DNA of 64,000 nucleotides, from positions 161,528 through 225,527 of the IMG/VR virus record IMGVR_UViG_3300028569_002417. The stretch is one strand, 5' to 3'. Below, in pieces: positions 22,596 through 56,137 of this stretch (positions are counted from its first letter, which is position 1; the number at the start of each line of letters is the position of its first letter). The position numbers and the translations under genes are program-made. The notes beneath the pieces were generated by a model. The model worked only from the letters and a program-made list of their open reading frames with translations. It was not told the origin of the DNA and made no database searches.

Positions 22596-24674
22596 ATGAC
22601 AAGCAAACTTAAAAAAGCAATTGTAAATTTCAATCGGGATCAATTCCGTGCAATTAACACAGAAATGTCATTTGGCGAATATCTTGACTTGTGTTATGAA
22701 AATCCAAAACTTCTTCGTAACTCATGGCAAACCATTTATGACATGATTATGGATAAGGGCAGCTACACAATCGAAGAGTATCGCAAGACTTATGTGAATT
22801 ATAAGTTTTTCGATGATCCAGATTGTCCAATCGTTGGCTTGGCTCCAATGAAAGATGCACTCGTTAAGTTCATCAAGGGTGCAGCTGGAGGATATGGCAC
22901 AGAACGAAGAATCCTTCTTCTCCACGGTCCTGTTGGCTCAAGTAAGTCCACAATTCTTCGTCTTTTTAAGCGCAGTATGGAGAAATATAGCCATACAGAA
23001 GAAGGATCTTGGTACAGCTTCAAATGGGTAAACCTACCTACAGGACCAGATGGCATTTATAATGATCCTGAATGCGAATGCCCAATGCATGAACAACCTC
23101 TTAAACTTTTGCCTGTTGATATTCGTGGACCAATTCTTTTTGAACTAAATAAAATTCACGAACAACAGACATCAGAAGAACAAAGATCTGATATTTATAC
23201 ACTCAAGTGCGCTGATGAACTTGATCCTCTTTGCAAAAAGTTCATGACTGTTCTTCTCAAGAAGTATGACGGCGATATTGAGAAGGTCCTAGAAAATCAC
23301 ATCAGAGTTATCCGCAAAGTCTACTCAGAAGCTGATCGTTGCGGAATTGCAACATTCCAGCCAAAAGATGAGAAAAATCAAGATAGCACCGAACTTACAG
23401 GAGATATAAATTTCCGTAATATTGGTAATTTCGGTAGCGATTCTGATCCAAGAGCATTCAACTTTGATGGTGAATTTTGTGTCGGCAACAGAGGAATCAT
23501 CGAGTTTATTGAAGCTCTAAAGCTTGATACTGCTTTCCTTTATGATCTTCTTGGTGCTTCTCAAGAACAAAGCATCAAGCCTAAGAAGTTTGCTCAGGTA
23601 AGTATCGATGAGGCAATCTGGTGCCATACCAATGATCCAGAATTCCAGAAGTTGAAATCAAATCAATACATGGAAGCTTTCCGTGATCGCACGACAAAGA
23701 TTGATGTTCCTTACACTCTGAGGTGGAGCGAAGAGCTTAGAATCCTTGAGAAGGATTACGGTCCCGGTAAGGTTCGTCAGCACATCGCCCCTCACACTCT
23801 TGAGATTGCCGCTCTTTGGAGCATTCTCACTCGTCTTGCTGATGACAAAGATGGCAAACTCAGCTTGGTCGAGAAGGCAGAACTTTATGACGGCAAGCTT
23901 CTTCCCGGTTGGACAGAAGACAGTGTTAAAGAACTAAAGGACAAGTATCCTGATGAAGGTATGAACAGTGGAGTATCAGTTCGATACCTTCAGGATAAGA
24001 TATCCAACTGTCTTGCGAATAATCATGATTATGTGAATATGTTCATGGTTTTGAACGAACTTCGTGATGGACTTGAAAATAGTAGTCTTCTTACCAATAA
24101 GGAACAGGTGAGTCGATACATTACATGTGTTGATTTGGCGGTGAAAAAGTTGACAGAAATACTTAAAAATGAGGTTCAAAAAGCTCTTGTCGGCGACAAG
24201 GAAGCTGTTAAGCGTCTTTGCACAAATTATATTGACAACGTGATGGCTTATATCAATAAGAATAAAATTAAGGACCAAATCACTGGTCAAGATCGCAAGC
24301 CAGATGAAAGGCTTATGCGTCAAATCGAAGAAAAGATTCAAATCCCAGATACTGGATGCGATGACTTCCGCCGCCAAATCGCAGCTTTCATTGGTCATCT
24401 TGCTCATGAAGGCAAGACATTCGCTTGGGACAGTAATCCAAAGCTAAGGAAGGCTCTTGAGGCAAAGCTCTTTGAAGATGTCCGTGATACTATCAAGCTT
24501 TCTGCCTTGACAATGAGTGGAGCAGCAGTCGTTGATAAGGACTTGCAGGAAAAGATCGATGCAGTCAAGACAAGACTTGTTAAGGATTTTGGATATAACG
24601 ACAGGTCTGCCACAGACGTTTTGGACTTTGTTTCCGGTATATTCTCCAGAGGCGACTTAGCCGAAGACGAATAA
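22596..24674 (+). CDS. prkA: PrkA/YeaG-family AAA+ serine protein kinase
   Basis: LLLHGPVGSSKST, CPMHEQPL, PKDEKNQDSTELTG, SDPRAFNFDGE, IAPHTLE, PDERLMRQIEE. Confidence 0.95.
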   Translation: MTSKLKKAIVNFNRDQFRAINTEMSFGEYLDLCYENPKLLRNSWQTIYDMIMDKGSYTIEEYRKTYVNYKFFDDPDCPIVGLAPMKDALVKFIKGAAGGYGTERRILLLHGPVGSSKSTILRLFKRSMEKYSHTEEGSWYSFKWVNLPTGPDGIYNDPECECPMHEQPLKLLPVDIRGPILFELNKIHEQQTSEEQRSDIYTLKCADELDPLCKKFMTVLLKKYDGDIEKVLENHIRVIRKVYSEADRCGIATFQPKDEKNQDSTELTGDINFRNIGNFGSDSDPRAFNFDGEFCVGNRGIIEFIEALKLDTAFLYDLLGASQEQSIKPKKFAQVSIDEAIWCHTNDPEFQKLKSNQYMEAFRDRTTKIDVPYTLRWSEELRILEKDYGPGKVRQHIAPHTLEIAALWSILTRLADDKDGKLSLVEKAELYDGKLLPGWTEDSVKELKDKYPDEGMNSGVSVRYLQDKISNCLANNHDYVNMFMVLNELRDGLENSSLLTNKEQVSRYITCVDLAVKKLTEILKNEVQKALVGDKEAVKRLCTNYIDNVMAYINKNKIKDQITGQDRKPDERLMRQIEEKIQIPDTGCDDFRRQIAAFIGHLAHEGKTFAWDSNPKLRKALEAKLFEDVRDTIKLSALTMSGAAVVDKDLQEKIDAVKTRLVKDFGYNDRSATDVLDFVSGIFSRGDLAEDE

Positions 24675-24690
24675 TAAAATAACTAATATT

Positions 24691-24734
24691 AAAAATAATT
24701 GACGGTAATGTTAAAGTTACCGTCAATTATTTTT
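24691..24734 (+). terminator. Intrinsic terminator after prkA
   Basis: aaaaataattgacggtaa / ttaccgtcaattattttt inverted repeat. Confidence 0.75.
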
Positions 24735-24815
24735 AGCTAGGTTTGCTTTATCGAAATCAATGGTTTATAATTTGATAAAGGCCAATCTTTGGCTTATCCG
24801 CTAAGAGGAATTATC

Positions 24816-25031
24816 ATGCAAAACCATTGGTTAGGTACTGCCCAAAGCAGGCAACTCATGAAAGAAATTGATGATGTTGCTTTGGATATTTGGGCTCAAG
24901 ATGGCACTCTTGGCGATCTTTTAGCAGCACTTACTGATGATCATACTGACCTTTTATTCGCAATGAAAATTAAAGATTTTACAAGTGATTCAAATAATGT
25001 TACTTGTGGAATCGAACTTATTTCTCCTTGA
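24816..25031 (+). CDS. Small hypothetical protein
   Basis: GAGGA RBS, ATG 24816. Confidence 0.55.
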   Translation: MQNHWLGTAQSRQLMKEIDDVALDIWAQDGTLGDLLAALTDDHTDLLFAMKIKDFTSDSNNVTCGIELISP

Positions 25032-25072
25032 ACATTAACAAGTACTGAGAGCTAAAAAAATAGAGGTGATTC

Positions 25073-26299
25073 ATGCCAAGAAGAATAGAGGAGGATTGGT
25101 CACATTTTCGTGATGTTGTTTCTGGACGAATCCGTAAGGCTCTCAAGAAATTTATAAAAAGTGGACAAATTGTAAAAAATCGTGGGAAAAATGGCAAAAT
25201 TTCCATCACAATCCCAAAGATTGATATCCCTCATATTGTCTACGGAAGCAACGGTGAAGGTGTTGGACGTGGACAAGGCAAAGAAGGCGATGTTATCGGT
25301 AAAGATCCAAAGAACGGAAAAGGAAAAGGAAATAGCGCAGGACAAGGTGAATCAGAAGGAATCACCATCAACCTCGATCTTGATGAAGTCCTAAAATTCA
25401 TGCAGTATGAGCTTCAACTTCCTAATCTGAAGAAGAAGCCTAATGAAATTTATGATGAAATAAAAATTAAATATAACAATATTTCTTTGATTGGTCCTGA
25501 GTCCCTCAGACACAATCGTCGTACTCTTATGCAAACACTTAAGCGTCAGGCTGCTGAAGGAACTCTTGATAAGATGAAGTATGTGGCAGGAGTCAAAGAT
25601 CCTGTTCGTGTTCTTCAGCCAATCAATGAAGATAAGCGTTACAGACAGTTCAACGAAATAAAGATTCCAAGCAGCAATGCACTTATTGTTTTCGCCCGTG
25701 ATGGATCTGGATCTATGGATCAAGCTAAATGTGAAATCGTAAGCGATATGGCTTGGTGGATTGATGTCTGGATTCGTCGATTCTATGACAGAGTTGATCG
25801 CCTCTACGTCTGGCATGACAGCGAAGCAATGGAAGTAGATGAGCAAAAGTTTTATAAGTATCGATTCGGAGGAGGAACAACTTGTTCTTCAGCATTAAAA
25901 TTTGTCACTAAACAATTTGAAAACAGATATCCTCCAAATAAATGGAACATTTATGTTTTCTATTTCACAGATGGCGAAAATTGGGGTGAAGATAATCAAA
26001 TATTCATCAATTCTTTAGCTGAAGATTTCAAACCTCATGTAGTTAATTTTACAGGAATCACTCAGATTCTTGCTTCAAGTTATAATGATTCAGTCAAATT
26101 TCATGTTGATGAAGCAATCAAATCAGGAAAATTAGATAAAGAATGCGTTCGCACAGTTGCAATTGGAGGAAGCCCCGATGGAAAATCGATGTGGTCTGCC
26201 CCAGCTTTGAGCGAAGAAAATAGAAACGAACAAGTAATTGAGGCTATTCAACAATTATTGGGCAATTCAAATAAAATAGTTCAGGATTACAAGGATTGA
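25073..26299 (+). CDS. yeaH: YeaH/YhbH (DUF444) vWA-domain protein
   Basis: G-rich linker, LQLPNL, RDGSGSM, GGGTTCSSAL, WNIYVFYFTDGENW; between prkA and spoVR. Confidence 0.92.
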   Translation: MPRRIEEDWSHFRDVVSGRIRKALKKFIKSGQIVKNRGKNGKISITIPKIDIPHIVYGSNGEGVGRGQGKEGDVIGKDPKNGKGKGNSAGQGESEGITINLDLDEVLKFMQYELQLPNLKKKPNEIYDEIKIKYNNISLIGPESLRHNRRTLMQTLKRQAAEGTLDKMKYVAGVKDPVRVLQPINEDKRYRQFNEIKIPSSNALIVFARDGSGSMDQAKCEIVSDMAWWIDVWIRRFYDRVDRLYVWHDSEAMEVDEQKFYKYRFGGGTTCSSALKFVTKQFENRYPPNKWNIYVFYFTDGENWGEDNQIFINSLAEDFKPHVVNFTGITQILASSYNDSVKFHVDEAIKSGKLDKECVRTVAIGGSPDGKSMWSAPALSEENRNEQVIEAIQQLLGNSNKIVQDYKD

Positions 26300-26308
26300 G
26301 GACTCATC

Positions 26309-29107
26309 ATGTCAAGTAAATTCTTTCACGGCTCAAGTCTTCTACTTGGTGATAACACCGTTCCCGGTGTTCAATTATCAAAAGAACTTAAAGAGTATAT
26401 CCCTGTAATTCTTAAAGCCTGCCGTGATTGGGGACTCGATTTCTATCCAACCGTTGTTCAACTTCTGACATATGATGAGATCAGCGAAATTGCCGCCTAT
26501 GGTGGTTTCCCAGTCCGCTTCCCACATTGGTCCTTCGGAATGGAATACGAAGAACTTCAACGTGGATATGAATTCGGTGGCCATAAAATATACGAAATGG
26601 TAGTGAATACAGATCCCTGTTATATCTATAATCTTAGTTCTAATACTCTTGCTGATCACTTGACTGTAGTCGCACATGCAACTGGTCATAATGATTTTTT
26701 CAAAAACAATATTCACTTCAGCGCCACTGATACGAATATGTTAAATAAAATGGCGAACCATGGGACCAGAATTCGCAATTACATGGCCAGATGGGGTAAG
26801 GAAAGGGTAACTGAGTTTCTTGATCATGTCATGAGACTCGAAACCCTTATAGATGGATCTGATGCTTGGACAGAAAAAGTTGTCAAAGATAAAAACATCT
26901 ATGACGAAAGAAAATATCATAAAGCCCGCAGACTTACTGTTGATCGTGAACGCATGTATATGGAACCATTTTTGAACACGCCTGAATTCAGGCAAAAAGA
27001 AAATCAAAAGGTTCATGATAAAGATATTGCTGATGAAATTGGTTTGTTTAAGAATCCAACTAAGAACATTCTTGGATACATTCGAGACAATGCTCCACTG
27101 AAGCCTTGGCAAGCAGATATTGTTTCGATGTTGTACGAAGAGGCTATTTATTTCTTCCCACAGAGGCAAACTAAGACTTTGAACGAAGGATGGGCCTGTG
27201 GGAAAAGGGATACTCTTGTTTGTAGTGATTTGGGTATTTTGACTTTAGGAGAAATAGTTGACAATAGAATGCCAGTCACCATTTATGATGGAGAACAAGA
27301 AAGAAAAGTTACGAATTGGTTTACTTTTGAAAATCGAGATGTGTATCGCATAGAGACTCGTCGTGGATATGTTTTTGAGGGGTCTAACAATCATCGCATC
27401 ATGGGCAGTGATGATTGGATTCGTCTGGATGGAATGTCAGTTGGACAGTCATTGAAGTTGTCTTATTCGGATATTTGGTCAAATGAATTGCAAGAAATTA
27501 CTTATGAATTACCAGAAAAAAGAATTGAACTTGATGAGATTGCCGAAATGGCATCTGTTACAAAATATCAAGTAAGTTATAGGAAATATCATTACAAAGG
27601 TGAAGAAAAAAATGATGTTTTAGGAAATCTGATTCAAGAATATGATAATCAAAAAACTACTTTCATGCGAAATAAGAGGAACATGATTAGTGTTCCTGAG
27701 TATATGAGTGAAGACTTTGCTTCATTTGTTGGGTATATGATTGGTGATGGACATATTTCCCTAGTGAAAAGAACTATGGGTTTGACATCTGGGGACAAAT
27801 CACAAATTGATCATTATGCTACTTTGCTGAAAGATTTATTTGGATTGGAATGTAAGATAAGATGGGATGGATCATCGAAAAATGGCAGGTATAGGGCTTC
27901 GATTAGCTCTAAAGATTTAGAACAACTTCTTATTCATCTTGGCATGAAAACAGGAGTTTGTGCTAGAATTAAAAATATACCAGAAATTATATTGAAGTCG
28001 CCAAAGAATGTTGTTGCGGCATTTATCAGATCTTATTTTGACTGTGATGGTTATGCTGGAAATGCAGGAGTCATACTCTCCACATCGAGCGATAGTATGT
28101 CTCGACAAATCCAGAATGTGCTTTTGAATTTCAAGATTTTGTCAACAAGAAGAAAGCAAAAGGATTCATGTTGGCATATTCGGATTACTGGTTCAGAAGC
28201 GGTTAAATTTGAAGAACAAATTGGATTTAATCTTCAAAGAAAACAAGATAAATTAAGAAAATATATTTCTGATCACAAATGGTTTGTGGAACAGAAGCTT
28301 GAAGATGAGATTGTTTCTGTTGAAAAAACTGGCACAGACACAGTTTATGATATTACAGTTGAAACAAGTCATCGATATTCATCTTGCGGATTTATAAATC
28401 ATAACAGCACCGTAGATTCTGTTATCATGGCAGAGAACGGGCATATCAGTCTTGGTCAAAATTCTGATGATTGTGGTATTATTGAATATTCTAATCACAA
28501 GATGGGAGTTCTTGGCGGTAAATACAGCATGAATCCCTATAAGATGGGATATTATTTGCTTAATGACATTCGTGAGCGTTGGGACAAAGGTCAGTTTGGA
28601 GAAGAGTGGGAAGAGTGTAACGATATCCACAAAAAAGAAAACTGGAACATCCAAACAAATAAGGGTAAAGAAAAGATTTTTGAAGTCAGGAAGTTTTATG
28701 ATGATTTGACATTTATCCATGAATTTTTCACTGAGGATTTTTGTCGCAAGCAAGAGTATTTCCATTGGAAATATTATCCCAATGGTGAATACAGGTTGGA
28801 TAGTCGAGATTATCAGGTAATCAAAAAGAATCTTATGGCTAGGCATATCAATGGTGGATTGCCATCAATTAAATTGATGGAGCCCAATTATGCTGGTCGT
28901 GGGATTATGATGTTGCAGCATGAGTCTGATGGTCGAAGTCTTTACGATCCTTATATCGGTGACGTTCTTCAATCATTAAGAGCCATTTGGGGCAATGATA
29001 TCATTCTTGCCACAGCTGATGATAACGGCAAGGAAAAAATTTATTGGCAGAGATCAGCAATATTAGAGATCATGGATCGAAGCCGTCTTTCTAAACATCT
29101 TGATTAG
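26309..29107 (+). CDS. spoVR: SpoVR/YcgB-family protein containing an intein
   Basis: GFPVRFPHWSFG, KIYEMVVN, AHATGHNDFFKNN, YFFPQRQTKTLNEGWA, NPYKMG. Confidence 0.93.
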   Translation: MSSKFFHGSSLLLGDNTVPGVQLSKELKEYIPVILKACRDWGLDFYPTVVQLLTYDEISEIAAYGGFPVRFPHWSFGMEYEELQRGYEFGGHKIYEMVVNTDPCYIYNLSSNTLADHLTVVAHATGHNDFFKNNIHFSATDTNMLNKMANHGTRIRNYMARWGKERVTEFLDHVMRLETLIDGSDAWTEKVVKDKNIYDERKYHKARRLTVDRERMYMEPFLNTPEFRQKENQKVHDKDIADEIGLFKNPTKNILGYIRDNAPLKPWQADIVSMLYEEAIYFFPQRQTKTLNEGWACGKRDTLVCSDLGILTLGEIVDNRMPVTIYDGEQERKVTNWFTFENRDVYRIETRRGYVFEGSNNHRIMGSDDWIRLDGMSVGQSLKLSYSDIWSNELQEITYELPEKRIELDEIAEMASVTKYQVSYRKYHYKGEEKNDVLGNLIQEYDNQKTTFMRNKRNMISVPEYMSEDFASFVGYMIGDGHISLVKRTMGLTSGDKSQIDHYATLLKDLFGLECKIRWDGSSKNGRYRASISSKDLEQLLIHLGMKTGVCARIKNIPEIILKSPKNVVAAFIRSYFDCDGYAGNAGVILSTSSDSMSRQIQNVLLNFKILSTRRKQKDSCWHIRITGSEAVKFEEQIGFNLQRKQDKLRKYISDHKWFVEQKLEDEIVSVEKTGTDTVYDITVETSHRYSSCGFINHNSTVDSVIMAENGHISLGQNSDDCGIIEYSNHKMGVLGGKYSMNPYKMGYYLLNDIRERWDKGQFGEEWEECNDIHKKENWNIQTNKGKEKIFEVRKFYDDLTFIHEFFTEDFCRKQEYFHWKYYPNGEYRLDSRDYQVIKKNLMARHINGGLPSIKLMEPNYAGRGIMMLQHESDGRSLYDPYIGDVLQSLRAIWGNDIILATADDNGKEKIYWQRSAILEIMDRSRLSKHLD
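27197..28405 (+). mobile_element. Intein (403 aa) with LAGLIDADG homing endonuclease in SpoVR
   Basis: NEGWA|CGKRDTLV ... VYDITVETSHRYSSCGFINHN|S; FVGYMIGDG and FIRSYFDCDG motifs. Confidence 0.92.
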
Positions 29108-35002: not shown

Positions 35003-35042
35003 TCAGATGACTCAAATTTTTACGAAAGGAGGCCAGTCGCAA

Positions 35043-36457
35043 GTGGAGATAGTCGGTTTTGAACATCTTCACTTGCACTAGTTTACTCCGATTTTTCTGT
35101 ATTAGATGGTTTTGGATCTGTAGAAGAGTATTGTGTTCGTGCTCCTCAGATCAATCAAAAGTTTTTAACAATTAGCGATCACGGTATGATGGGAGCAATT
35201 CCACGTCAGATTCGTGGATGTGAAAAAATTAATGACAAGTATGGCAAAGACACTCTTAGCCCCATATTTGCAGTCGAACTGTATATGAATCGTCTTCAGC
35301 CTGAGATGACAGAGCAGGACGAAGGAAAGAAAATATATTCAAGTCTGACAGAAGAAGAGCAAAGCGAATTTAAGTCTAGCAGTCATTTGCTCGCTATTGC
35401 CTACAGCAACGAAGGATATAAGAATCTTGTTCGTCTTTCTAGTTGGGGCTGGACAAAGGGATTTTATCGTCGCCCAAGAGTCAACTACGAACAATTACTG
35501 AAATATAAAGAAGGAATTATTTTCACAAGTTGTTGTTATGCCAGTGAGATTGGAAGAGCATTTGACAAAGGTGGAGAAGAAGCTGGATTCGCTATGGTCG
35601 AGCGTTATGTTGAAATGTTCGGCAAAGAACATTTCTATCTCGAAATAATGCTTTTGGATTTCAAAAAGCAAAAACCATATGATGAATTTATTGTAAAAGC
35701 AAAGGAAAAGTATGGTCTTAAAATCATACTCACAAATGATTGCCATTATTGCAACAAAGAAGATAGTCAATATCAGAGACTTATGTTGATGATGCAGACT
35801 AATCGTACTATTGCCGAAATTGAAAAGGCAATGAAGGAAGATTCAAATCAAGATTTCTTTGAGTTGCAGGATGCGAATCTTTGGATGAAGAGCGAAGAGG
35901 AATTGAATGATAAGTGGTTGAGTGATTATCAAGATTCAATTCCTTATGAGATTTTTTGCGAGGCCAAGAGGACAACTGTTGATATTTGCAAAAAGGCAAA
36001 GGGAGTTCAGCTTGATCGTAGTTTGAAATTACCATTTATTCCCGATGGTGATGAAAAATTGAGGGAAGAAATCATGATTGGTTTCCAAAAAAGGAAGCTC
36101 CCAAAGACAAGGGAATATCTTGATAGAATCAAGGAAGAATACAGTCTTATCATCAGGAAGGGATTTACGAGTTACTTTTTGATTCAAAAGATGATGACAG
36201 ATGAGGCTCGTAGAGTCTGTCGTGATTTGCTTGGATTTGGTGACGGCTCACAGGCTGTTGGTCCCGCTAGAGGCTCAGCAGCAGGTTCACTTATTTGCTA
36301 TTGTCTAGGCATCACTAGTGTCGATCCTGTGCGTGAAGGCTTACTCTTCAGTCGTTTCATGAGTGAAGCTCGTGGAGGAAGAAGCTTGCAGTTAGAATTC
36401 AAGAATATCGATCCTCTTCCACTAGAGGAGTTGGAATTGAGGCAGTCGGGGTTGTGA
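35043..36457 (+). CDS. dnaE: DNA polymerase III alpha, N-terminal PHP part; frame interrupted by 8 nt at 35079-35086
   Basis: AGGAGG + GTG gives MEIVGFEHLHLH, stop; second frame SDFSVLDG..ISDHG..HLLAIA..EGYKNL..TNDCHY..RGSAAGSLICYCLGIT..LLFSRF. Confidence 0.88.
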
Positions 36458-38972: not shown

Positions 38973-39324
38973 GGGGCCGTATTTAGAATTCGATTCGGAT
39001 GGACGGCTTGTGAGTGGCATGTAGAGGTTGGTCAGAAGGCCTCTTAAAAAATCTGACTAAAGCCTTAACTGGCGAAACTGTTTACGCTATGGCTGCATAA
39101 GTGCAACCACAGACTTAGGTAGCGATGCTAGTAGCGACCGAAAGTTTGATGTAAAATCTGGCTGGTCATATGCATTTCAATGGGCAAATGACGAGATAAA
39201 GTTGATAGTGCTGAAAAAGGTTTTATTTGTTGTACCTTTTCAGATGACATCAAGCAATAAAATAAACATGTAGAGGCTCACAGGTAGTTATGCGAAGACA
39301 GCGGGGCGGGTCCGCTCGGCTCCA
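38973..39324 (+). ncRNA. ssrA: tmRNA; tag peptide (A)GETVYAMAA
   Basis: 5' GGGGCCG pairs with 3' CGGCTCC-A including G3-U; ATTCGA motif; TAACT-GGC resume codon 39071, stop 39098-39100; 352 nt. Confidence 0.9.
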
Positions 39325-39370
39325 CTTGCCATGAAGACCTCTTGTTCATAAAATAGAACAAGGGGTCTTT

Positions 39371-40591: not shown

Positions 40592-40670
40592 TGATGGATG
40601 TTGTTTTTTCACATGAATATGGCGGGGAAATAGTCTTGTTTTGAGGATTGTTTCTTTGTATTATCGGGTG

Positions 40671-41990
40671 ATGAGCAAGCAAAGATTCCTAGATGTTTGT
40701 GTCGCTTCTCTTCGTGCAAAGGGTTTGTACGAAGAGCAGCGTTATGCCAAAAGATTGAAGTGGGAAACAGAAGAGATCATTGCGAAGGAAAAGCACGAAT
40801 ATTTCCTTGATTTGTATGATAAGAAGGTGAAGTATCCTAAAAATCAAAACAATCTTTTGGTTTGTTGGCTTTTAGGTTTAGTTCCAGATCATGACATTGA
40901 GAAAGATCCTTCAAATGTATTCACGGGTGACTTGCCCGATGTAGACATTGATTATATTCCAATGGTTCGTGATTATTTGAAGAATGAATGGGCACCGAAA
41001 ACATTTGGCGAAGATTATGTTTGTAACATTGGTAACTATACGACATTTGGAATTAAATCGGCATTGATTGACATGGCTCGTGTTCATGGCGAAAGTCGTG
41101 AAGAGGTCATGGCAATCACTAAGAATCTTGATGCTAAGGATGATGAAGGCAAACCAATCACATGGGATGCAGCATTAAGGCTTGACCCTGAATTCAAAGC
41201 ATATACTGAGAAATATCCGTCAATTGCTCAAGCAACAAAAAAATTAATTAATCGCAATCGTGGCATGGGAGTACATGCTGGTGGATTGATTGTTTCGAGA
41301 ATTCCACTTCATGATCTTGTTCCTTTGGTTAAAAGGAAAGGTAATCCTCAAGCTAGTGCATGGGTAGAGGGACTACATGGGCAGGATTTGCAGCCTGTTG
41401 GCCTTGTTAAATTTGACTTACTTGTGATTAGTAATCTTTTGCAAATTGCTCGTTGTTGCGAGACTGTTAGAATCAATCATGGTGTTACTTCAATTTGTGC
41501 CAAGCCCGGAGAGCCAGATTGGTCTGATGTTGATTGTTGGAGGAATGATCCTGATTCAATTGCAATGGCTAATCGTGGTGATTTGAAATGTATATTTCAA
41601 TTTGATTCTGAGGGAATGAGGGCATTGGTTAGGGCTGGAGGAGTTGATCGATTTGAAGATTTAGTGGCATATTCCAGTTTATTCCGACCCGGCTGTATTA
41701 AATGTTTGCAAAAAGATTCTTTTGTTATGTTATACAATGGTCAAAAAGAAATAAAAAATTTGCAGCCGGGCCTTGATAATATAGCGTATCTAAATTCTCA
41801 AAGAAAAGTAAATTACACAAAAAGATATTTTGTCATAAATTCTGGTTATAAAAAAATATTGAGAATCACAACTAAAAGTGGCAAAGTCTTGCTTCTCTCG
41901 CCTGATCATCCAGTCTTGACTGATAAATTGAAATATATAAAGGCAGGAGTTCTTAAAATTGGAGATAAAGTTGGAGTAATTAAAAAATAA
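40671..41990 (+). CDS. dnaE: DnaE middle part (catalytic palm) ending in N-intein
   Basis: LPDVDIDY, GVHAGGL, GLVKFDLL, IFQFDSEG, LFRPG then intein block A. Confidence 0.92.
   Translation: MSKQRFLDVCVASLRAKGLYEEQRYAKRLKWETEEIIAKEKHEYFLDLYDKKVKYPKNQNNLLVCWLLGLVPDHDIEKDPSNVFTGDLPDVDIDYIPMVRDYLKNEWAPKTFGEDYVCNIGNYTTFGIKSALIDMARVHGESREEVMAITKNLDAKDDEGKPITWDAALRLDPEFKAYTEKYPSIAQATKKLINRNRGMGVHAGGLIVSRIPLHDLVPLVKRKGNPQASAWVEGLHGQDLQPVGLVKFDLLVISNLLQIARCCETVRINHGVTSICAKPGEPDWSDVDCWRNDPDSIAMANRGDLKCIFQFDSEGMRALVRAGGVDRFEDLVAYSSLFRPGCIKCLQKDSFVMLYNGQKEIKNLQPGLDNIAYLNSQRKVNYTKRYFVINSGYKKILRITTKSGKVLLLSPDHPVLTDKLKYIKAGVLKIGDKVGVIKK
41703..41987 (+). mobile_element. Split intein N-half (95 aa)
   Basis: CLQKDSFV (block A), GKVLLLSPDHPVLT (block B), LKIGDKV then stop. 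Confidence 0.88.
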
Positions 41991-42025
41991 TTCATATATA
42001 TCCTTGCACAGAGCGGGAGATATAT

Positions 42026-43039
42026 ATGATTTGTAAAATATGCAATAAAGAGGTATCAGAAAAATTTTATCGCCATCTAAATAGTAGTCATAAGATGAAA
42101 AAAGGAGATTATCTAAATTTGTTTCCAGAGCAAAAAGAGGAGTACAAAAGTCAAATTTCTGTTTTGTGGAACAAAGGAAAAACCAAGTGCGATGATGATC
42201 GCATCATGGCGATTGCCGATAAGATAAAAAAATTCACAGGACAGGAACACATACGAAAGCAAAGATCGGAAAACATGAAAAAAATGTATCAAAATGGTGA
42301 TATGTTGTCCCCTGAGATGAGAGCTTATGTGCAAAAAAAAGGCACAGATGGATGGGTCAAAAAGGTTAAGGAATCTTCTTTTGAAGAAAGAAAGATATTA
42401 TTAAAGAATTTTTCTGATGCTGGCAACAAAAAAATACAAGAAAATAAAATAAATCGCACGCCTGAAGATTATATGCGAATTTGCAAAAATGCCAAAGGAA
42501 AAGCTCAATATGGTAATTGTGCAGAATGCGGAAATCAAATTGTAATATGGGTTGGAGGCAAGCCACGACCTAAACAAAGATTTTGTAATCAATCATGTCA
42601 AAAAATATATCAAAAAAAACATCCTTTTTATACATTATCTCATGTTGGAAAGCATTATTTTTCAGAAAAAATGCAATGTGAATTTTATCTAAGATCAAAA
42701 TTAGAAATTTGGCTTGCAGAAATGTTAGATGTAAATGAAAAAGTGAATTCTTGGCATATTACACCATTCGCTGTAAGCTACGAGTTTCATGGAAAAAAAC
42801 GATTGTATTACCCAGATTTCATGATAAACTCAAAGTGGGTTGTTGAATTGAAATCTGGTTATATATTTGACATCGATGCCGACAAAAATAGAGCAAAGTT
42901 TATGGCTGCACAAGATTATTCAGAGGAGATAAATTGTGAGTTTTTTTATTGGCAATTTGATAATCACAATATGACAAAAAAGTTATTTGAAAAAGATCAA
43001 AGGGTGATTGATTTCTTTTCATTTTTACAGGAAGCATGA
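42026..43039 (+). CDS. Free-standing putative homing endonuclease (Zn fingers + TnsA-N-like PD-(D/E)XK)
   Basis: CKIC..HL..H, GKTK..D.RI, CAEC..FCNQSC, LRSKLE, YYPDF, VELKS; lies between split-intein halves. Confidence 0.8.
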   Translation: MICKICNKEVSEKFYRHLNSSHKMKKGDYLNLFPEQKEEYKSQISVLWNKGKTKCDDDRIMAIADKIKKFTGQEHIRKQRSENMKKMYQNGDMLSPEMRAYVQKKGTDGWVKKVKESSFEERKILLKNFSDAGNKKIQENKINRTPEDYMRICKNAKGKAQYGNCAECGNQIVIWVGGKPRPKQRFCNQSCQKIYQKKHPFYTLSHVGKHYFSEKMQCEFYLRSKLEIWLAEMLDVNEKVNSWHITPFAVSYEFHGKKRLYYPDFMINSKWVVELKSGYIFDIDADKNRAKFMAAQDYSEEINCEFFYWQFDNHNMTKKLFEKDQRVIDFFSFLQEA

Positions 43040-43040
43040 A

Positions 43041-43172
43041 ATGCTTGATTTTGAAGAAATAGTTCAGATTGAAGAGGTTGGTGAAGATGATTGTTATGAT
43101 ATTATGTTGTTAGAAAAAGACTTGTATTTGGACGAGCCAAATTTTATAGCTAACGATATTGTTGTTCACAAT
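43041..43172 (+). mobile_element. Split intein C-half (44 aa)
   Basis: EIVQIEEVGEDDCYDI...NFIANDIVVHN followed by Cys+1. Confidence 0.9.
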
Positions 43173-45560
43173 TGTGGCATGGACAAGCGTTATGTTGAGC
43201 GTAAGAAGGGTCATGAAAAATATGAAATTCATCATTTAATCAAGCCTATTCTTGAAAAAACATATGGAGTTATGATTTATCAAGAGCAAATCATGCAGAT
43301 ATTGAATGTTGTTGGTGAAATTCCTTTGAAGGATTGTGAAGCTGTAAGAAAAGCTATATCAAAGAAGAAAATAGAATCTATTGAAAAATATAAAGATATG
43401 TTTATTAAGAATGGGCAGAAAAATTTAAGTTTTACAAAAGAACAAATGGAAGAGTTTTTTAATCAAATATTGTCTTGGAGTGAATATGGCTTTAATAAAA
43501 CTTTGACCGAAGACACAATTATAAATTGTGTTGATGGCGCAAAGCAAATAAAAGACATTTGTGCCGGAGACATAGTTTATTCTATAAATGAAAAGGGAGA
43601 ACAGGTACAAACTGAAGTTGCGGCAGTTCATGATCATGGCGTGGTCAATGTTGTGGAGGCGACATTTGATGACGGCTATGTTGTGAGGTGTACTTATGAT
43701 CACAAATTTTTGACTGAAGAAGGACAAGTTCCTCTTTGGTTAATTGTTAAAGACAACATGGTTGTGCTGAGTTCTCCGTTGGGAGAACATGCAGGGGAAG
43801 AAAAAGAATGGTCATCTGGCAAGGTGTGGACAAATAATAAAAACTCTGGAAAAGATGAAAGAGCATCGAGAGAATTGCAAGGAGTGCAACTATCTGAAGT
43901 GGAGGCTGGAGGGAAAGAAATACATTTCCAGATGCGGAGTGGAATTTCTGCGTTCACCTCAACTGGTCCAAAATCATCAGAAAACTGGAGAAATGAATTC
44001 GGAGTGGTTCACTTCACTCCAGAGTATGCTTCTATCACCAATACCCGGAATTTGGTGTCTAGGAGAATATTACGAGTTGTGACCGTGGGTAAAAGACAAT
44101 GTTACGATCTTGAAGTCGCCATCTCAACTCACAACTTTATTCTTCCGAATGGAATAATCACATCGAACTCACATGCTGTGGCTTATACTTACATCAGCAT
44201 GTATCTTTTGTATTTGAAGGTTCATTACCCTCATGAATTTTATGCTAGCATGTTATCATGTGAGACTTTGGCTGAGAAGATAAAAGACATTAAGATGGAG
44301 GCTAAGATACATGGTGTTGAGATGCATCGTCTTGACATTAACAAATCTGGCATTAATTTTGAGCTTAAGGATAATTTAATTTATTTTGGTTTTAGTAATG
44401 TGAAGGGTATAGGAGAGGGTCCTGCTCAAAAGATAGTGGCTGGTCAGCCGTATCGTAGTTTTGAGGATTTCCTTTATCGATGTGGAACAGATGCTTCGAT
44501 GTTGAAGCCGATACTTGGTTTAAGATGTTTTAGGGATCGTGATCCAATTACTTTGTGGAAATTTGCAGAGCATTTCAAAGAATGTTTTAAGAAAAACGAA
44601 GAGAAGCGCAAGCGTTTTGGTACTTCTTTGGAGAGGTACGAAGACGAGTTAAGGGAGCTTATTCCTGAAGTTGAATTCAAATTATCTGATTTGAGTGGTG
44701 ATTCACCATTTGATAACATTGAGTATCAGCAAAAATATGATAAGGAAGAGGAGATTACTGTTCTCAAGGAGTATGAGTGTAAGGAAGGGGATGGTGTTGG
44801 AAGGATTGAGATGGTATATGTTCCTGTTGATGGGACTGATGTTGTGATTGAGCGTGAGGTGATGAGATATTACAAGAAGATTGCTACTAAGAGGCCTTGG
44901 AACAGGTGGAAGGATCTTAAGAATCTTTGGAATAAAAGAAAGAGAACTATAGCGAGATTTTCTGATGCTGATTTCAAGACATTGCCAAGATTGATTGATT
45001 TCGATCCAGACCAATATGATATACCTAAGGATTTGGCTAAGGAGTTTAAGAATCCGGTTGTTTCAGAAGAAAAGTTTTATGGATTTGCTTGGATTCATGA
45101 GCTTGAGAGAAGTCCTGATTATAGAGGGAATTTGACATTTGATTCTTTGAGAAGTGACATTGACAGTTCTTCTGGTCCTGTTGAGTTGAGGGTTAAGAAA
45201 GTAATTCAGATGACTAGTAAAAAGGGTTCTACTTATTCTCAGGTATTGGCGGAAGATGTTACTGGTCAAGAGAATAAGATTAATGTTTGGTCTGATGACT
45301 GGGATCGTTGGCATAAAGAATTAAGTGAAGGTAACTTAATTAGGATAAGATTGCAACCTCCTTCTGGTGGTTTCAATACATTCTTGTTGGAATCAAATCA
45401 GAATGGCAAGTATAGAGGTCAGAAGAGATATCGAGACAAGGATGATGATCCTCGTGTTATTGTCATGAGAGTTGGCTTAAAAGAAGAAGAGAAATTCATG
45501 ACAGATGAAGAGGTTTTGGAACTTTTTAATAATTTAGGTATGGAAAATAAAAATGACTGA
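43041..45560 (+). CDS. dnaE: DnaE C-terminal part, starting with C-intein and containing a cis intein
   Basis: ILEKTYGVMIYQEQIMQ, YGFNK..SHAVAY, YLKVHYP, DINKS, VKGIG, OB-fold end. Confidence 0.92.
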   Translation: MLDFEEIVQIEEVGEDDCYDIMLLEKDLYLDEPNFIANDIVVHNCGMDKRYVERKKGHEKYEIHHLIKPILEKTYGVMIYQEQIMQILNVVGEIPLKDCEAVRKAISKKKIESIEKYKDMFIKNGQKNLSFTKEQMEEFFNQILSWSEYGFNKTLTEDTIINCVDGAKQIKDICAGDIVYSINEKGEQVQTEVAAVHDHGVVNVVEATFDDGYVVRCTYDHKFLTEEGQVPLWLIVKDNMVVLSSPLGEHAGEEKEWSSGKVWTNNKNSGKDERASRELQGVQLSEVEAGGKEIHFQMRSGISAFTSTGPKSSENWRNEFGVVHFTPEYASITNTRNLVSRRILRVVTVGKRQCYDLEVAISTHNFILPNGIITSNSHAVAYTYISMYLLYLKVHYPHEFYASMLSCETLAEKIKDIKMEAKIHGVEMHRLDINKSGINFELKDNLIYFGFSNVKGIGEGPAQKIVAGQPYRSFEDFLYRCGTDASMLKPILGLRCFRDRDPITLWKFAEHFKECFKKNEEKRKRFGTSLERYEDELRELIPEVEFKLSDLSGDSPFDNIEYQQKYDKEEEITVLKEYECKEGDGVGRIEMVYVPVDGTDVVIEREVMRYYKKIATKRPWNRWKDLKNLWNKRKRTIARFSDADFKTLPRLIDFDPDQYDIPKDLAKEFKNPVVSEEKFYGFAWIHELERSPDYRGNLTFDSLRSDIDSSSGPVELRVKKVIQMTSKKGSTYSQVLAEDVTGQENKINVWSDDWDRWHKELSEGNLIRIRLQPPSGGFNTFLLESNQNGKYRGQKRYRDKDDDPRVIVMRVGLKEEEKFMTDEEVLELFNNLGMENKND
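43500..44168 (+). mobile_element. Cis intein (223 aa) at YGFNK|SH, begins with Thr
   Basis: TLTEDT, CTYDHKFLT, CYDLEV..HNFILPNGIITSN|S. Confidence 0.88.
43789..44082 (+). CDS. Overprinted alternative-frame ORF inside the intein (Cys/His-rich)
   Basis: GGGAG RBS + ATG; spans the intein linker and ends just inside the C-terminal splicing region. Confidence 0.45.
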   Translation: MQGKKKNGHLARCGQIIKTLEKMKEHRENCKECNYLKWRLEGKKYISRCGVEFLRSPQLVQNHQKTGEMNSEWFTSLQSMLLSPIPGIWCLGEYYEL

Positions 45561-55525: not shown

Positions 55526-55591
55526 CATCATAGAATTTAAGTCGTATTTTTGTATAGGGTCTTTTTTATGTTGGAGCATGGATTTCACAAG

Positions 55592-56137
55592 ATGCAGCAA
55601 AACAAATTTCCTAGAGAGCGAAGCGAAGATCAAAACAGAGTTAACTGGCAGATAAGAGTGCCACAAGTTAGGGTTGTTCGTGAAGAAGAGCAACTTGGCA
55701 TTATGGCTACTGATGAGGCAAGAAAACTTGCCATGGACAATGGTCTTGATCTAGTAGAGATCGCTCCTACTGCGAAGCCTCCTGTTTGTAGGATTATGGA
55801 TTATGGTCGTTATAAATACGAACTGAAAATCAAGAAAAAAGAAGCTGCAAAGAAGCAGCGTGAGTCACAAGTCCAGATAAAGGAAATTAGACTTCGTCCT
55901 GCTATTCAAGATCATGATATTGAAACAAAAATTAATCAGGCGAAGAATTTTCTTGAAGAAGGTTGTAAGGTTCAATTTTACCTTCAATTCAAGGGTTACC
56001 GTGAATTGAATCATAAAGAGCAGGGTTTCGCTGTTATGAAAAAAATTGTTGAAACAATGGAGCAATTTGGAGTCGTAGAGAAAAGACCTGCGATGGAAGG
56101 CAATCGAATTACATGCTTTTTTACTCCCAAAGTATAG
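55592..56137 (+). CDS. infC: Translation initiation factor IF-3 (start could be 55568)
   Basis: VNWQIRVPQVRVV, LDLVEIAPTAKPPVCRIMDYGRYKYE, KEIRLRPAIQDHD. Confidence 0.95.
   Translation: MQQNKFPRERSEDQNRVNWQIRVPQVRVVREEEQLGIMATDEARKLAMDNGLDLVEIAPTAKPPVCRIMDYGRYKYELKIKKKEAAKKQRESQVQIKEIRLRPAIQDHDIETKINQAKNFLEEGCKVQFYLQFKGYRELNHKEQGFAVMKKIVETMEQFGVVEKRPAMEGNRITCFFTPKV

Follow-up and report, generated by a model that had tools for sequence, protein, structure and literature searches.

Natural bypassing has been proven in only a handful of cases, namely for T4 gene 60 and its homologs, for the byps of yeast mitochondria and for the phiHau3 terminase. In the large terminase of Streptomyces phage phiHau3 (g6/g7/g8), gaps of 7-10 nt are bypassed, as established by mass spectrometry in E. 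coli (Smith et al. 2013; Antonov et al. 2023, PMC10732093). For T4 gene 60, exit-side mRNA pairing has been proposed to drive the forward bypass (bioRxiv 10.1101/2024.12.09.627546; 10.1101/2022.08.31.505936), and the gene 60 insert protects against cleavage by MobA (Manning & Atkins 2022, bioRxiv 10.1101/2022.08.31.505936). The same study noted the lack of any report of similar bypassing from other phages. Short hops of E. coli tRNAs over a stop codon, synthetic or at a low level, e.g. on CUU-UAG-CUA, were reportedly described by Weiss et al. 1987.

In the 64,000 nt stretch of DNA analyzed here as a whole (the window), the dnaE gene of a jumbo phage is split near its 5′ end by an 8 nt gap that opens with a stop codon. 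On comparative evidence, we infer that this gene for the N-terminal part of DnaE is probably decoded by a programmed short-range bypass (hop); no product has been observed. Bypassing in dnaE or in these phages was not reported anywhere in the full-text literature searched, and with the inferred bypass the dnaE locus would represent a new family without homology to the known ones and with dozens of variants in nature.

Of the known cases, the phiHau3 large terminase comes closest. In both cases, a phage gene is broken by short non-coding blocks which open with a slow-to-decode codon, and the junction is highly conserved, so that a frameshift with inserted residues is unlikely. The pause codon is a stop in dnaE but the rare UUA in phiHau3, and about 40 loci with 24 gap variants stand against just three terminase genes. 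Moreover, the genes differ and share no homology, and no covarying start-codon hairpin has been reported for phiHau3.

The preliminary description of the locus had drawn a parallel to T4 gene 60, which held only in part, the phiHau3 terminase being closer. As in gene 60, a take-off codon is followed by a stop, the peptidyl-tRNA would re-pair at a landing triplet, and an upstream stem-loop is proposed to propel the forward movement. Both are replication genes that are also split into separate genes and lie beside homing endonucleases. In contrast to gene 60, the gap spans 5-9 nt instead of 50 nt, interrupts dnaE instead of a topoisomerase gene, and contains neither a take-off stem-loop nor a Shine-Dalgarno sequence; there is no long nascent-peptide signal, and the landing triplet is usually near-cognate. 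The dnaE hairpin is strongly conserved, whereas the 5′ stem-loop of gene 60 is not conserved between clades. With its 8 nt gap, its 12-residue peptide and dnaE as the affected gene, the locus is not a member of the gene 60/mobA cassette, though the inferred hop would be similar in working.

Layout of the interrupted dnaE gene

All features described here lie on the + strand. The Shine-Dalgarno sequence GGAGG (35028..35032) is located 10 nt 5′ of the GTG start codon, and an RBS of the AGGAG type is kept in relatives. Coding segment 1 (35043..35078), delimited by ORF translation, the PHP profile and relatives, comprises 12 codons, VEIVGFEHLHLH, which include PHP motif I (HxH). It extends from GTG at 35043 to the putative take-off codon CAC (His; 35076..35078) and is followed by TAG at 35079-81. 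The 8 nt coding gap TAGTTTAC (35079..35086) consists of this stop codon, the spacer TT and a landing-like TAC (35084-86). Coding segment 2 (35087..36457, stop included), referred to as DnaE piece 1, begins with TCC (Ser) at 35087 in the +2 frame relative to segment 1, reads SDFSVLDGFG... and encodes the PHP domain and the first ~100 positions of the pol III alpha core. Its frame is closed on the 5′ side by TGA at 35060-62, and the first ATG, GTG or TTG in this frame is the ATG at 35186, 33 codons in. Neither a start codon nor an RBS is present at the resume site, and no slippery motif was found at the hop site of the window.

The Pfam PHP profile (164 positions) aligns to the downstream piece from position 6 (E = 8e-31), while in uninterrupted relatives the match runs from position 1, at the HLHLH residues. 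Positions 1-5 of the PHP profile (HLHLH) are encoded upstream of the gap and positions 6-162 downstream, and therefore a skip of 35079-35086 fits both pieces with nothing missing or extra. By the profile, the gap lengths and the flanks, the locus meets the bypass criterion of one protein encoded by two ORF segments with non-coding nucleotides between them. In gene calling, such polymerase genes will be mistaken for truncated genes or pseudogenes.

The 8 nt recur in contigs of four samples, two of them represented by 100% identical contigs and the other two by 97% identical ones. A sequencing or assembly artefact, for which nothing speaks beyond the general risk of indel errors in metagenome assemblies, can be dismissed with near certainty, as the identical gap occurs in four assemblies from different samples and about 40 distinct contigs from many metagenomes carry related gaps with ordered features.

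We compared the coding sequences on either side of the gap among relatives. Variation in segment 1 is mostly synonymous, with I, G, E and HLHLH invariant, and HLHLH is kept with synonymous CTT/CTC, TTG/CTT/CTG and CAC/CAT changes. On the downstream side, an invariant Ser is written both TCN and AGY and a Leu uses six codons. These results indicate that both flanks are under protein-level selection, each in its own frame.

Alternatively, the two segments might never be joined, leaving a DnaE without the HxH strand or a decaying gene. In the former case, translation would begin internally at 35186, or ribosomes would re-initiate past the 12-codon leader, which would then act as a regulatory uORF. 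In its favor, the start codon is sequestered by a hairpin, as in translational control elements, and some DnaE PHP domains do not bind metal any more. Against it, the leader keeps exactly PHP positions 1-5, with synonymous changes, even between alleles with no more than about 60% identity in the body of the protein. Over the 33 codons that separate the gap from the first start codon, the protein sequence is conserved, including the metal-ligand Asp of LDG, the resume site lacks a start codon and an RBS, and the downstream protein is strongly constrained. We therefore regard this model as highly improbable.

Short gaps at the same codon boundary in related loci

A protein-guided scan of viral contigs yielded 62 related loci with 53-100% identity, and the HLHLH and LDG codons were located in each. 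The PHP motif is uninterrupted in 25 of the 62 loci, while 26 carry a short gap right after HLHLH at the same codon boundary as in the window (class A). The others harbor a 40-47 nt GC-hairpin insert 3′ of the next Asp codon (class B; 4/62), a 6 nt Leu-TAA-Leu insert (CTT TAA CTA, CTC TAA CTT or CTT TAA CTT; class C; 3/62), or a group I intron of 223-227 nt inside the SLLDG codons (RF00028, 91-102 bits; 4/62). One class-A locus has a second, hairpin-containing insert of 46 nt with TAA at its start, further along the motif. With pattern scans of viral and metagenome contigs included, class A numbers 40 distinct loci, which carry 24 distinct gaps; a profile-guided scan added one class-A gap (TAGCCAC) and five class-B alleles of 40 or 42 nt. 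Among the 40 class-A loci, the gap is mostly 8 nt (n=25) or 7 nt (n=12), with single cases of 5, 6 and 9 nt.

A stop codon is the first triplet in all 24 distinct gaps, usually TAG, with TGA in four gap types and TAA in one, so that the bypass criterion of a slow-to-decode codon directly 3′ of the take-off codon is met in 24/24. The resume codon directly 3′ of the gap encodes Ser or Thr. The last triplet of the gap is NAY, resembling the His take-off codon CAY, in 18 of the 24 distinct gaps (background in the window, 0.14); it is a perfect His codon (CAT or CAC) in four, and CTT, GTC, TTT or CAA, which match the take-off codon poorly, in six. In 12/24 gaps, the last triplet is the first site after take-off where the GUG anticodon can form three pairs, G·U counted. 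The window is among these cases, with UAC at +8. The nominal p-values for the landing-triplet counts, 2e-11 and 8e-7, are only upper bounds on significance because the gap counts are not phylogenetically independent. The landing rule is loose, and the triplet in the window is near-cognate only (UAC vs CAC).

The gap lengths bear on a conventional programmed frameshift at the stop (+2 or -1 in the window), by which the rest of the gap would be translated and VY or LVY inserted. In support of this model, frameshifting is classically stimulated by a stop in the A site, the shifted frames of the gap are without a stop, and a 5′ hairpin can favor forward shifts. However, gaps of 5, 6, 7, 8 and 9 nt would require shifts of +2, 0, +1, +2 and 0, respectively, and the 6 and 9 nt gaps are in frame yet stop-bearing, so that readthrough or a hop is needed. 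In addition, one to three unrelated residues would enter the most conserved motif of the protein, no slippery sequence is present, and peptidyl-tRNA-His re-pairs poorly at +1 and +2 but well at the gap end. As the gap lengths cover all three classes modulo 3, the criteria for a fixed +1 or -1 frameshift are not met, and we consider this explanation unlikely. The locus resembles the +1 frameshift site of prfB (RF2) in having an early in-frame stop in the A site and an upstream mRNA element promoting forward movement. Nevertheless, prfB undergoes a fixed +1 shift on the slippery CUU_U with an upstream Shine-Dalgarno sequence, and a fixed shift of this type is excluded because the displacement in dnaE varies from 5 to 9 nt.

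Several claims made from the sequence alone in the preliminary description could be judged by this comparison. Its account of the stop, the 8 nt gap, SDFSVLDG, the strong RBS and the intact sides held in full, as did that of the near-cognate UAC before the resume codon, most gaps (18/24) ending in the His-like NAY. The homolog check for a conserved stop and a variable gap which it had proposed was run and returned 24 gaps of 5-9 nt at the same boundary, all with the stop first. One part of a case that it had named as refuting, namely that all relatives are uninterrupted, did not hold, since 26/62 carry the gap, and its two alternatives, assembly error and a recent inactivating insertion, are excluded. 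Its bypass reading is supported by the comparison; the junction peptide is unobserved and the mechanism is still inferred.

The inserts of classes B and C resemble other known systems. The class C relatives L037, L041 and L047 (CTT-TAA-CTA, CTC-TAA-CTT and CTT-TAA-CTT, respectively) are textbook copies of the E. coli stop-hop pattern. The hop proposed for class A would, like E. coli stop hopping, be short, independent of frame and directed to a matched or near-matched triplet, but E. coli stop hopping is engineered or adventitious, at around 1%, whereas the dnaE pattern is natural, conserved and equipped with a dedicated hairpin. The Byp elements of Magnusiomyces capitatus mitochondria (27-55 nt) are bypassed non-coding inserts in essential genes and spread as small mobile GC-rich hairpins; they resemble the 40-47 nt inserts of L008, L014, L026, L046 and L218. 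The gap in the window is far shorter and has no internal structure, unlike byps, which belong to a eukaryotic organelle and pause at an unassigned sense codon.

Class A is scattered over the DnaE protein tree, where well-supported branches force at least 17 gains or losses. A single origin of the gap was thus rejected, and the gap is not a simple clade marker.

A covarying hairpin upstream of the gap

The window can form an mRNA hairpin of 12 bp, including one G·U pair, just upstream of the gap (z = -3.3 vs shuffles). Its 5′ arm (35039..35050) holds the GTG start codon, and its 3′ arm (35065..35076), supported by covariation, corresponds to the H-L-H-L codons and the first base of the take-off codon. 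The preliminary description had put forward a 10 bp hairpin (35041-35050/35065-35074), which is partly upheld: the structure is real, but it is 12 bp long, covaries and is specific to interrupted alleles. In all class-A alleles, the region from just 5′ of the start codon onward pairs with the H-L-H-L codons, and in some of them the whole take-off codon is paired, the start ATG lying opposite the take-off CAT. In an alignment of 32 distinct sequences, 99% of the cells are paired, as compared with 37-55% in partner-slid controls. Compensatory changes on both sides were found in five of the 12 hairpin pairs, e.g. from GTG/CAC to ATG/CAT, and the second codon changes from Glu to Lys, tracking the change of CTC to CTT in the opposite arm. 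One allele that is short of two loop codons regains an 11 bp helix in a new register.

Folding was compared by allele type over the 48 nt ending at the take-off codon. The energies range from -18 to -25 kcal/mol in all class-A alleles and from -12 to -19 kcal/mol in class B, while they are -2.8 to -10.3 kcal/mol in uninterrupted alleles, -2 to -5 kcal/mol in class C and about -7 kcal/mol in intron-bearing alleles. The 12 bp hairpin is present in every class-A allele and in no uninterrupted allele. In class B (inserts of 40, 41, 42 and 47 nt), the take-off site is displaced by six bases (two codons) in the 3′ direction; in the hairpin upstream, the 3′ arm is likewise displaced and still abuts the take-off region. 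In phylogenetically independent pairs taken from the DnaE protein tree, the hairpin follows the gap in 13.6 (about 14) and the opposite occurs in 0 (p about 1e-4). The number of independent events may be overcounted on the protein tree because the hairpin and the gap, which are <50 nt apart, might be co-inherited as one recombining module.

The hairpin therefore satisfies the criterion of a 5′ stem-loop of the gene 60 type, since its 12 bp reach up to the take-off codon, covary and are confined to interrupted alleles. It also buries the start codon, and it cannot be discounted that control of initiation is its primary role. A downstream barrier structure was not supported, as the predicted folds of the 78 nt following the resume codon are no more stable in interrupted than in uninterrupted alleles.

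The intron-bearing alleles, which are repaired at the RNA level and are hairpin-free, provide a useful internal control. They also bring up another explanation, that the gap is removed or repaired in RNA by excision, editing or ligation, or that polymerase slippage restores the frame. In favor of RNA repair, a genuine group I intron occupies the same motif in some relatives, so that RNA-level repair does occur there, and the nearby hairpin could act as a recognition element. Against it, no mechanism is known to us that takes 5-9 nt out of a bacterial or phage mRNA, and the invariable 5′ stop and the 3′ His-like triplet are features for a ribosome, not for a splicing system; slippage is opposed by the absence of a homopolymer run. 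There is thus little to recommend this explanation.

Proposed hop and origin of the gaps

These data show that two conserved coding segments are separated by a non-coding gap whose length varies and that a covarying hairpin is specific to the gap. That a hop takes place, how efficient it is, what the hairpin does and where the gap came from are all inferred from geometry and conservation. In the proposed hop, initiation at GTG 35043 would yield a 12-residue peptide ending in HLHLH, and the ribosome would pause with peptidyl-tRNA-His on CAC (35076-78) and TAG in the A site, the stop codon supplying the pause. A fraction of the ribosomes, instead of terminating, would let the mRNA slide by 8 nt, the tRNA-His anticodon would re-pair with the near-cognate UAC (35084-86), and decoding would restart at UCC (Ser). 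The product would run from (f)Met-EIVGFEHLHLH straight into SDFSVLDGFGSVEEYCVR, with the predicted junction HLHLHSDFSVLDG, and its HLHLH-SDFSVLDG would be an intact PHP metal-binding motif.

The slow-to-decode stop and the 12 bp hairpin are the inferred stimulators. At take-off, the 3′ arm of the hairpin (about -11 to +1 relative to the take-off codon) would be in the mRNA channel of the ribosome and the 5′ arm outside. As the arms re-zip behind the ribosome, the mRNA would be drawn forward over a distance close to the gap length: the helix can form only when the mRNA moves in the direction of translocation, and most of the helix would need roughly the skipped 5-9 nt. The same principle has been put forward for the 5′ stem-loop and exit-side pairing of gene 60, and dnaE would show it in a much cleaner and conserved form. 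No nascent-peptide signal was found beyond the motif itself. Several points speak against the hop. No product has been observed and no cultured relative is known, the landing triplet is only near-cognate in the window and matches poorly in 6/24 gap variants, and no downstream barrier is specific to interrupted alleles; the possible co-inheritance of hairpin and gap and a possible role of the hairpin in initiation also count here. Moreover, the nascent peptide has only 12 residues at take-off, far short of the long peptide signal of gene 60, and a low-efficiency bypass looks a costly route to a replicative polymerase.

A bolder reading, for which we see as much reason to doubt as to believe, is that these loci form a natural, widespread family of hairpin-driven hops whose gaps are kept as immunity scars. 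According to this reading, the re-zipping hairpin would strip the take-off codon from peptidyl-tRNA-His and ratchet the mRNA by 5-9 nt, and the same ratchet would move 40-47 nt in sister alleles, with neither a nascent-peptide signal nor a structure inside the gap being needed. The gaps would be retained for destroying the target of homing endonucleases or introns that attack the DNA of the PHP motif, and such immunity scars would parallel the protection from MobA by the gene 60 insert. With five gap lengths, three stops, about ten landing triplets and five hairpin versions, the loci constitute a natural mutational series that could probe the minimal bypass signal and whether exit-side mRNA pairing drives forward sliding.

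The five kinds of interruption lie within about 24 bp of the same highly conserved PHP motif. This clustering, together with the inteins elsewhere in the gene, gives the motif the appearance of a homing hot spot, which might retain inserts disrupting the target site. The stretch that separates the dnaE start from a conserved gene of 72 residues is hypervariable; at 12 of 67 loci, it contains a free-standing gene for an HNH endonuclease (phrog_559), which is either intact or truncated. Where this gene is directly upstream of dnaE, 11 of the 12 loci are interrupted. A homing endonuclease as the cause of the gap was not accepted and remains merely suggestive, since the uninterrupted L033 carries the HNH gene and the window does not. 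Probably, though with much less certainty than for the hop, the gap arose and spread as the scar of a mobile element or homing endonuclease or as an immunity allele. The finding ties recoding to the arms race of phages with their introns, inteins and homing endonucleases.

Genome context and the pieces of DnaE

The window belongs to a large phage genome; the contigs carrying the locus are 225 kb and 168 kb and are 100% identical here. The window also encodes RecA, a DEAD-box helicase, PrkA/DUF444/SpoVR, DnaJ, a full-length IF3 and a tmRNA. A search of GenBank phages for a cultured relative gave a best match of 54% identity, which is uninterrupted, and a pattern scan of 185,579 genomes gave chance matches only, with no cultured relative or host.

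We looked for other recoding in the window by comparing five adjacent or overlapping same-strand ORF pairs with PHROG and Pfam, and no pair matched one family. No suppressor or unusual tRNA was found in the window, and the flanks of 48 relatives hold only tRNA-Asn and tRNA-Pro. An alternative genetic code was rejected, as all three stops occur at the site and the long ORFs are intact under code 11. A link to tmRNA was also rejected. By ARAGORN, tmRNA genes appeared to be missing from class-A loci (Fisher p = 0.005), but the independent pairs are not significant, and the link is also undone by the Rfam tmRNA in the window itself.

DnaE piece 1 matches Pfam PHP and positions 2-98 of DNA_pol3_alpha, and its best PDB matches are the DnaE proteins of Thermus and Mycobacterium (E down to 2e-34). 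Piece 2 (40641..41990) covers DNA_pol3_alpha 100-259 and part of the finger and ends in the N half of a split intein. Piece 3 (43008..45560) begins with the C half of the split intein and contains the finger, a contiguous mini-intein and HhH (HHH_6). As PHP, core, finger and HhH are all present, spread over several genes, the gene encodes a bacterial-type pol III alpha (DnaE). The dnaE identity given in the preliminary description therefore held, with the correction that in this phage family DnaE always spans at least two genes. Piece 1 breaks off immediately ahead of the PDxDxD palm motif; in the family, piece 2 is located 0.9-5 kb 3′ of piece 1.

In a fractured gene, by definition, the N and C halves of an intein are divided between two neighboring genes that flank a gene for an endonuclease (Dassa et al. 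2009, PMC2677866). In the window, piece 2 ends in ...RPG|CIKC... and piece 3 begins with ...VVHN|C, and a free-standing gene for a TnsA/Vsr-like endonuclease (42026..43039) lies between the split-intein halves. Pieces 2 and 3 meet this definition, of which the hop site is not a part.

Hairpin inserts and other irregularities in the PHP motif

Besides class A, the short gaps of 5–9 nt directly after HLHLH to which the window allele belongs, longer interruptions were found in the dnaE PHP motif of related viral and metagenome loci. Inserts of 40, 41, 42 and 47 nt follow the Asp codon of S/T-D-F (L008, L014, L026, L046, L218–L220, L223 and L225). Each forms a GC-rich hairpin in which homologs show compensatory substitutions, and an internal stop is present in some of them. 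As their lengths cover all three frames, these inserts resemble the bypass elements of gene 60 or byp. L064, L112 and L127 carry two interruptions within one PHP motif: the first is a class-A gap of 8 nt, and the second is an insert of ~46 nt between S-L-L and D-G, in which an initial TAA or TGA precedes a hairpin.

Two smaller irregularities were observed at the motif. In L236, the distance from HxH to DG is 17 nt rather than 18 nt, a T-run being one T short; this reflects a sequencing error or else a site of single-base frameshifting. When window 35020–35110 is folded to its minimum energy, the Shine-Dalgarno GGAG (35028–35031) pairs with the CUCC (35086–35089) spanning the landing and resume codons of the proposed ribosome bypass. 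Relatives whose resume codon differs do not conserve this pairing, which is likely fortuitous.

Group I intron in the PHP motif and HNH endonuclease gene 5′ of dnaE

In L048 (5777–5999), and at the same site in L057, an ORF-less group I intron of 223–227 nt (RF00028) interrupts the PHP motif that holds the proposed hop site, splitting the S-L-L-D-G Leu codon. By our own reading of the sequence, the 5′ exon ends with U and the intron with G. Three other loci, L037, L041 and L047, harbor a 6 nt in-frame insert (TAACTA or TAACTT) giving Leu-TAA-Leu. These 6 nt are identical to the start of the L048 intron as delimited here, and thus may have been left behind when an intron was lost imprecisely. 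The upstream hairpin, a 12 bp mRNA helix seen in class-A alleles, is absent from these three alleles.

Of the 67 loci, 12 have a free-standing HNH endonuclease gene (phrog_559) directly 5′ of the start of dnaE, including L020 (5137–5928), L042 (4770–5933), L047 (4968–5966), L057 (4944–5720) and L033 (3849–4661); the gene is truncated in L112 and L046. The protein, which contains repeated CxxC DNA-binding modules, is a candidate homing endonuclease for the PHP-motif hot spot.

Split DnaE genes and inteins

DnaE is encoded in the window by separate genes for piece 1 (35087–36457), piece 2 (40641–41990) and piece 3 (43008–45560). The break between pieces 1 and 2 lies between ..SRFMSEARGG and ..PDVDIDY, and its position is kept in all relatives with sufficient flank, in which the two pieces are 0.9–5 kb apart and the space is filled by unrelated genes. 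No intein halves were recognizable at this break. A split intein (window 41700–43170; ..RPG|CIKC.. and ..VVHN|CGMD..) links piece 2 to piece 3, and between its halves lies a TnsA/Vsr-like endonuclease gene (42026–43039); this is a ‘fractured gene’ arrangement. Piece 3 also contains a contiguous mini-intein at residues ~179–387.

Additional full-size inteins were observed within the PHP domain of piece 1 in L033 and L054, inserted after ..IFA|C.., and in L060, inserted after ..TNDC|L...

tmRNA, IF3 and the PrkA-DUF444-SpoVR trio

A tmRNA gene (38973–39327, + strand; Rfam RF00023, 100 bits) sits between DnaE pieces 1 and 2 in the window. This gene was missed by ARAGORN and found by Rfam. With one program or the other, at least 11 relatives also show a tmRNA gene that lies between the dnaE pieces or close to them (L013, L014, L017, L018, L019, L035, L046, L048, L052, L057 and L060). 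The window also encodes a full-length homolog of translation initiation factor IF3 (55550–56137, + strand; phrog_9787), matching Pfam IF3_N and IF3_C with E ~1e-29 each.

Elsewhere in the window, the phage carries the gene trio PrkA, DUF444 and SpoVR (22596–29107), and the SpoVR gene contains an intein with a LAGLIDADG endonuclease.
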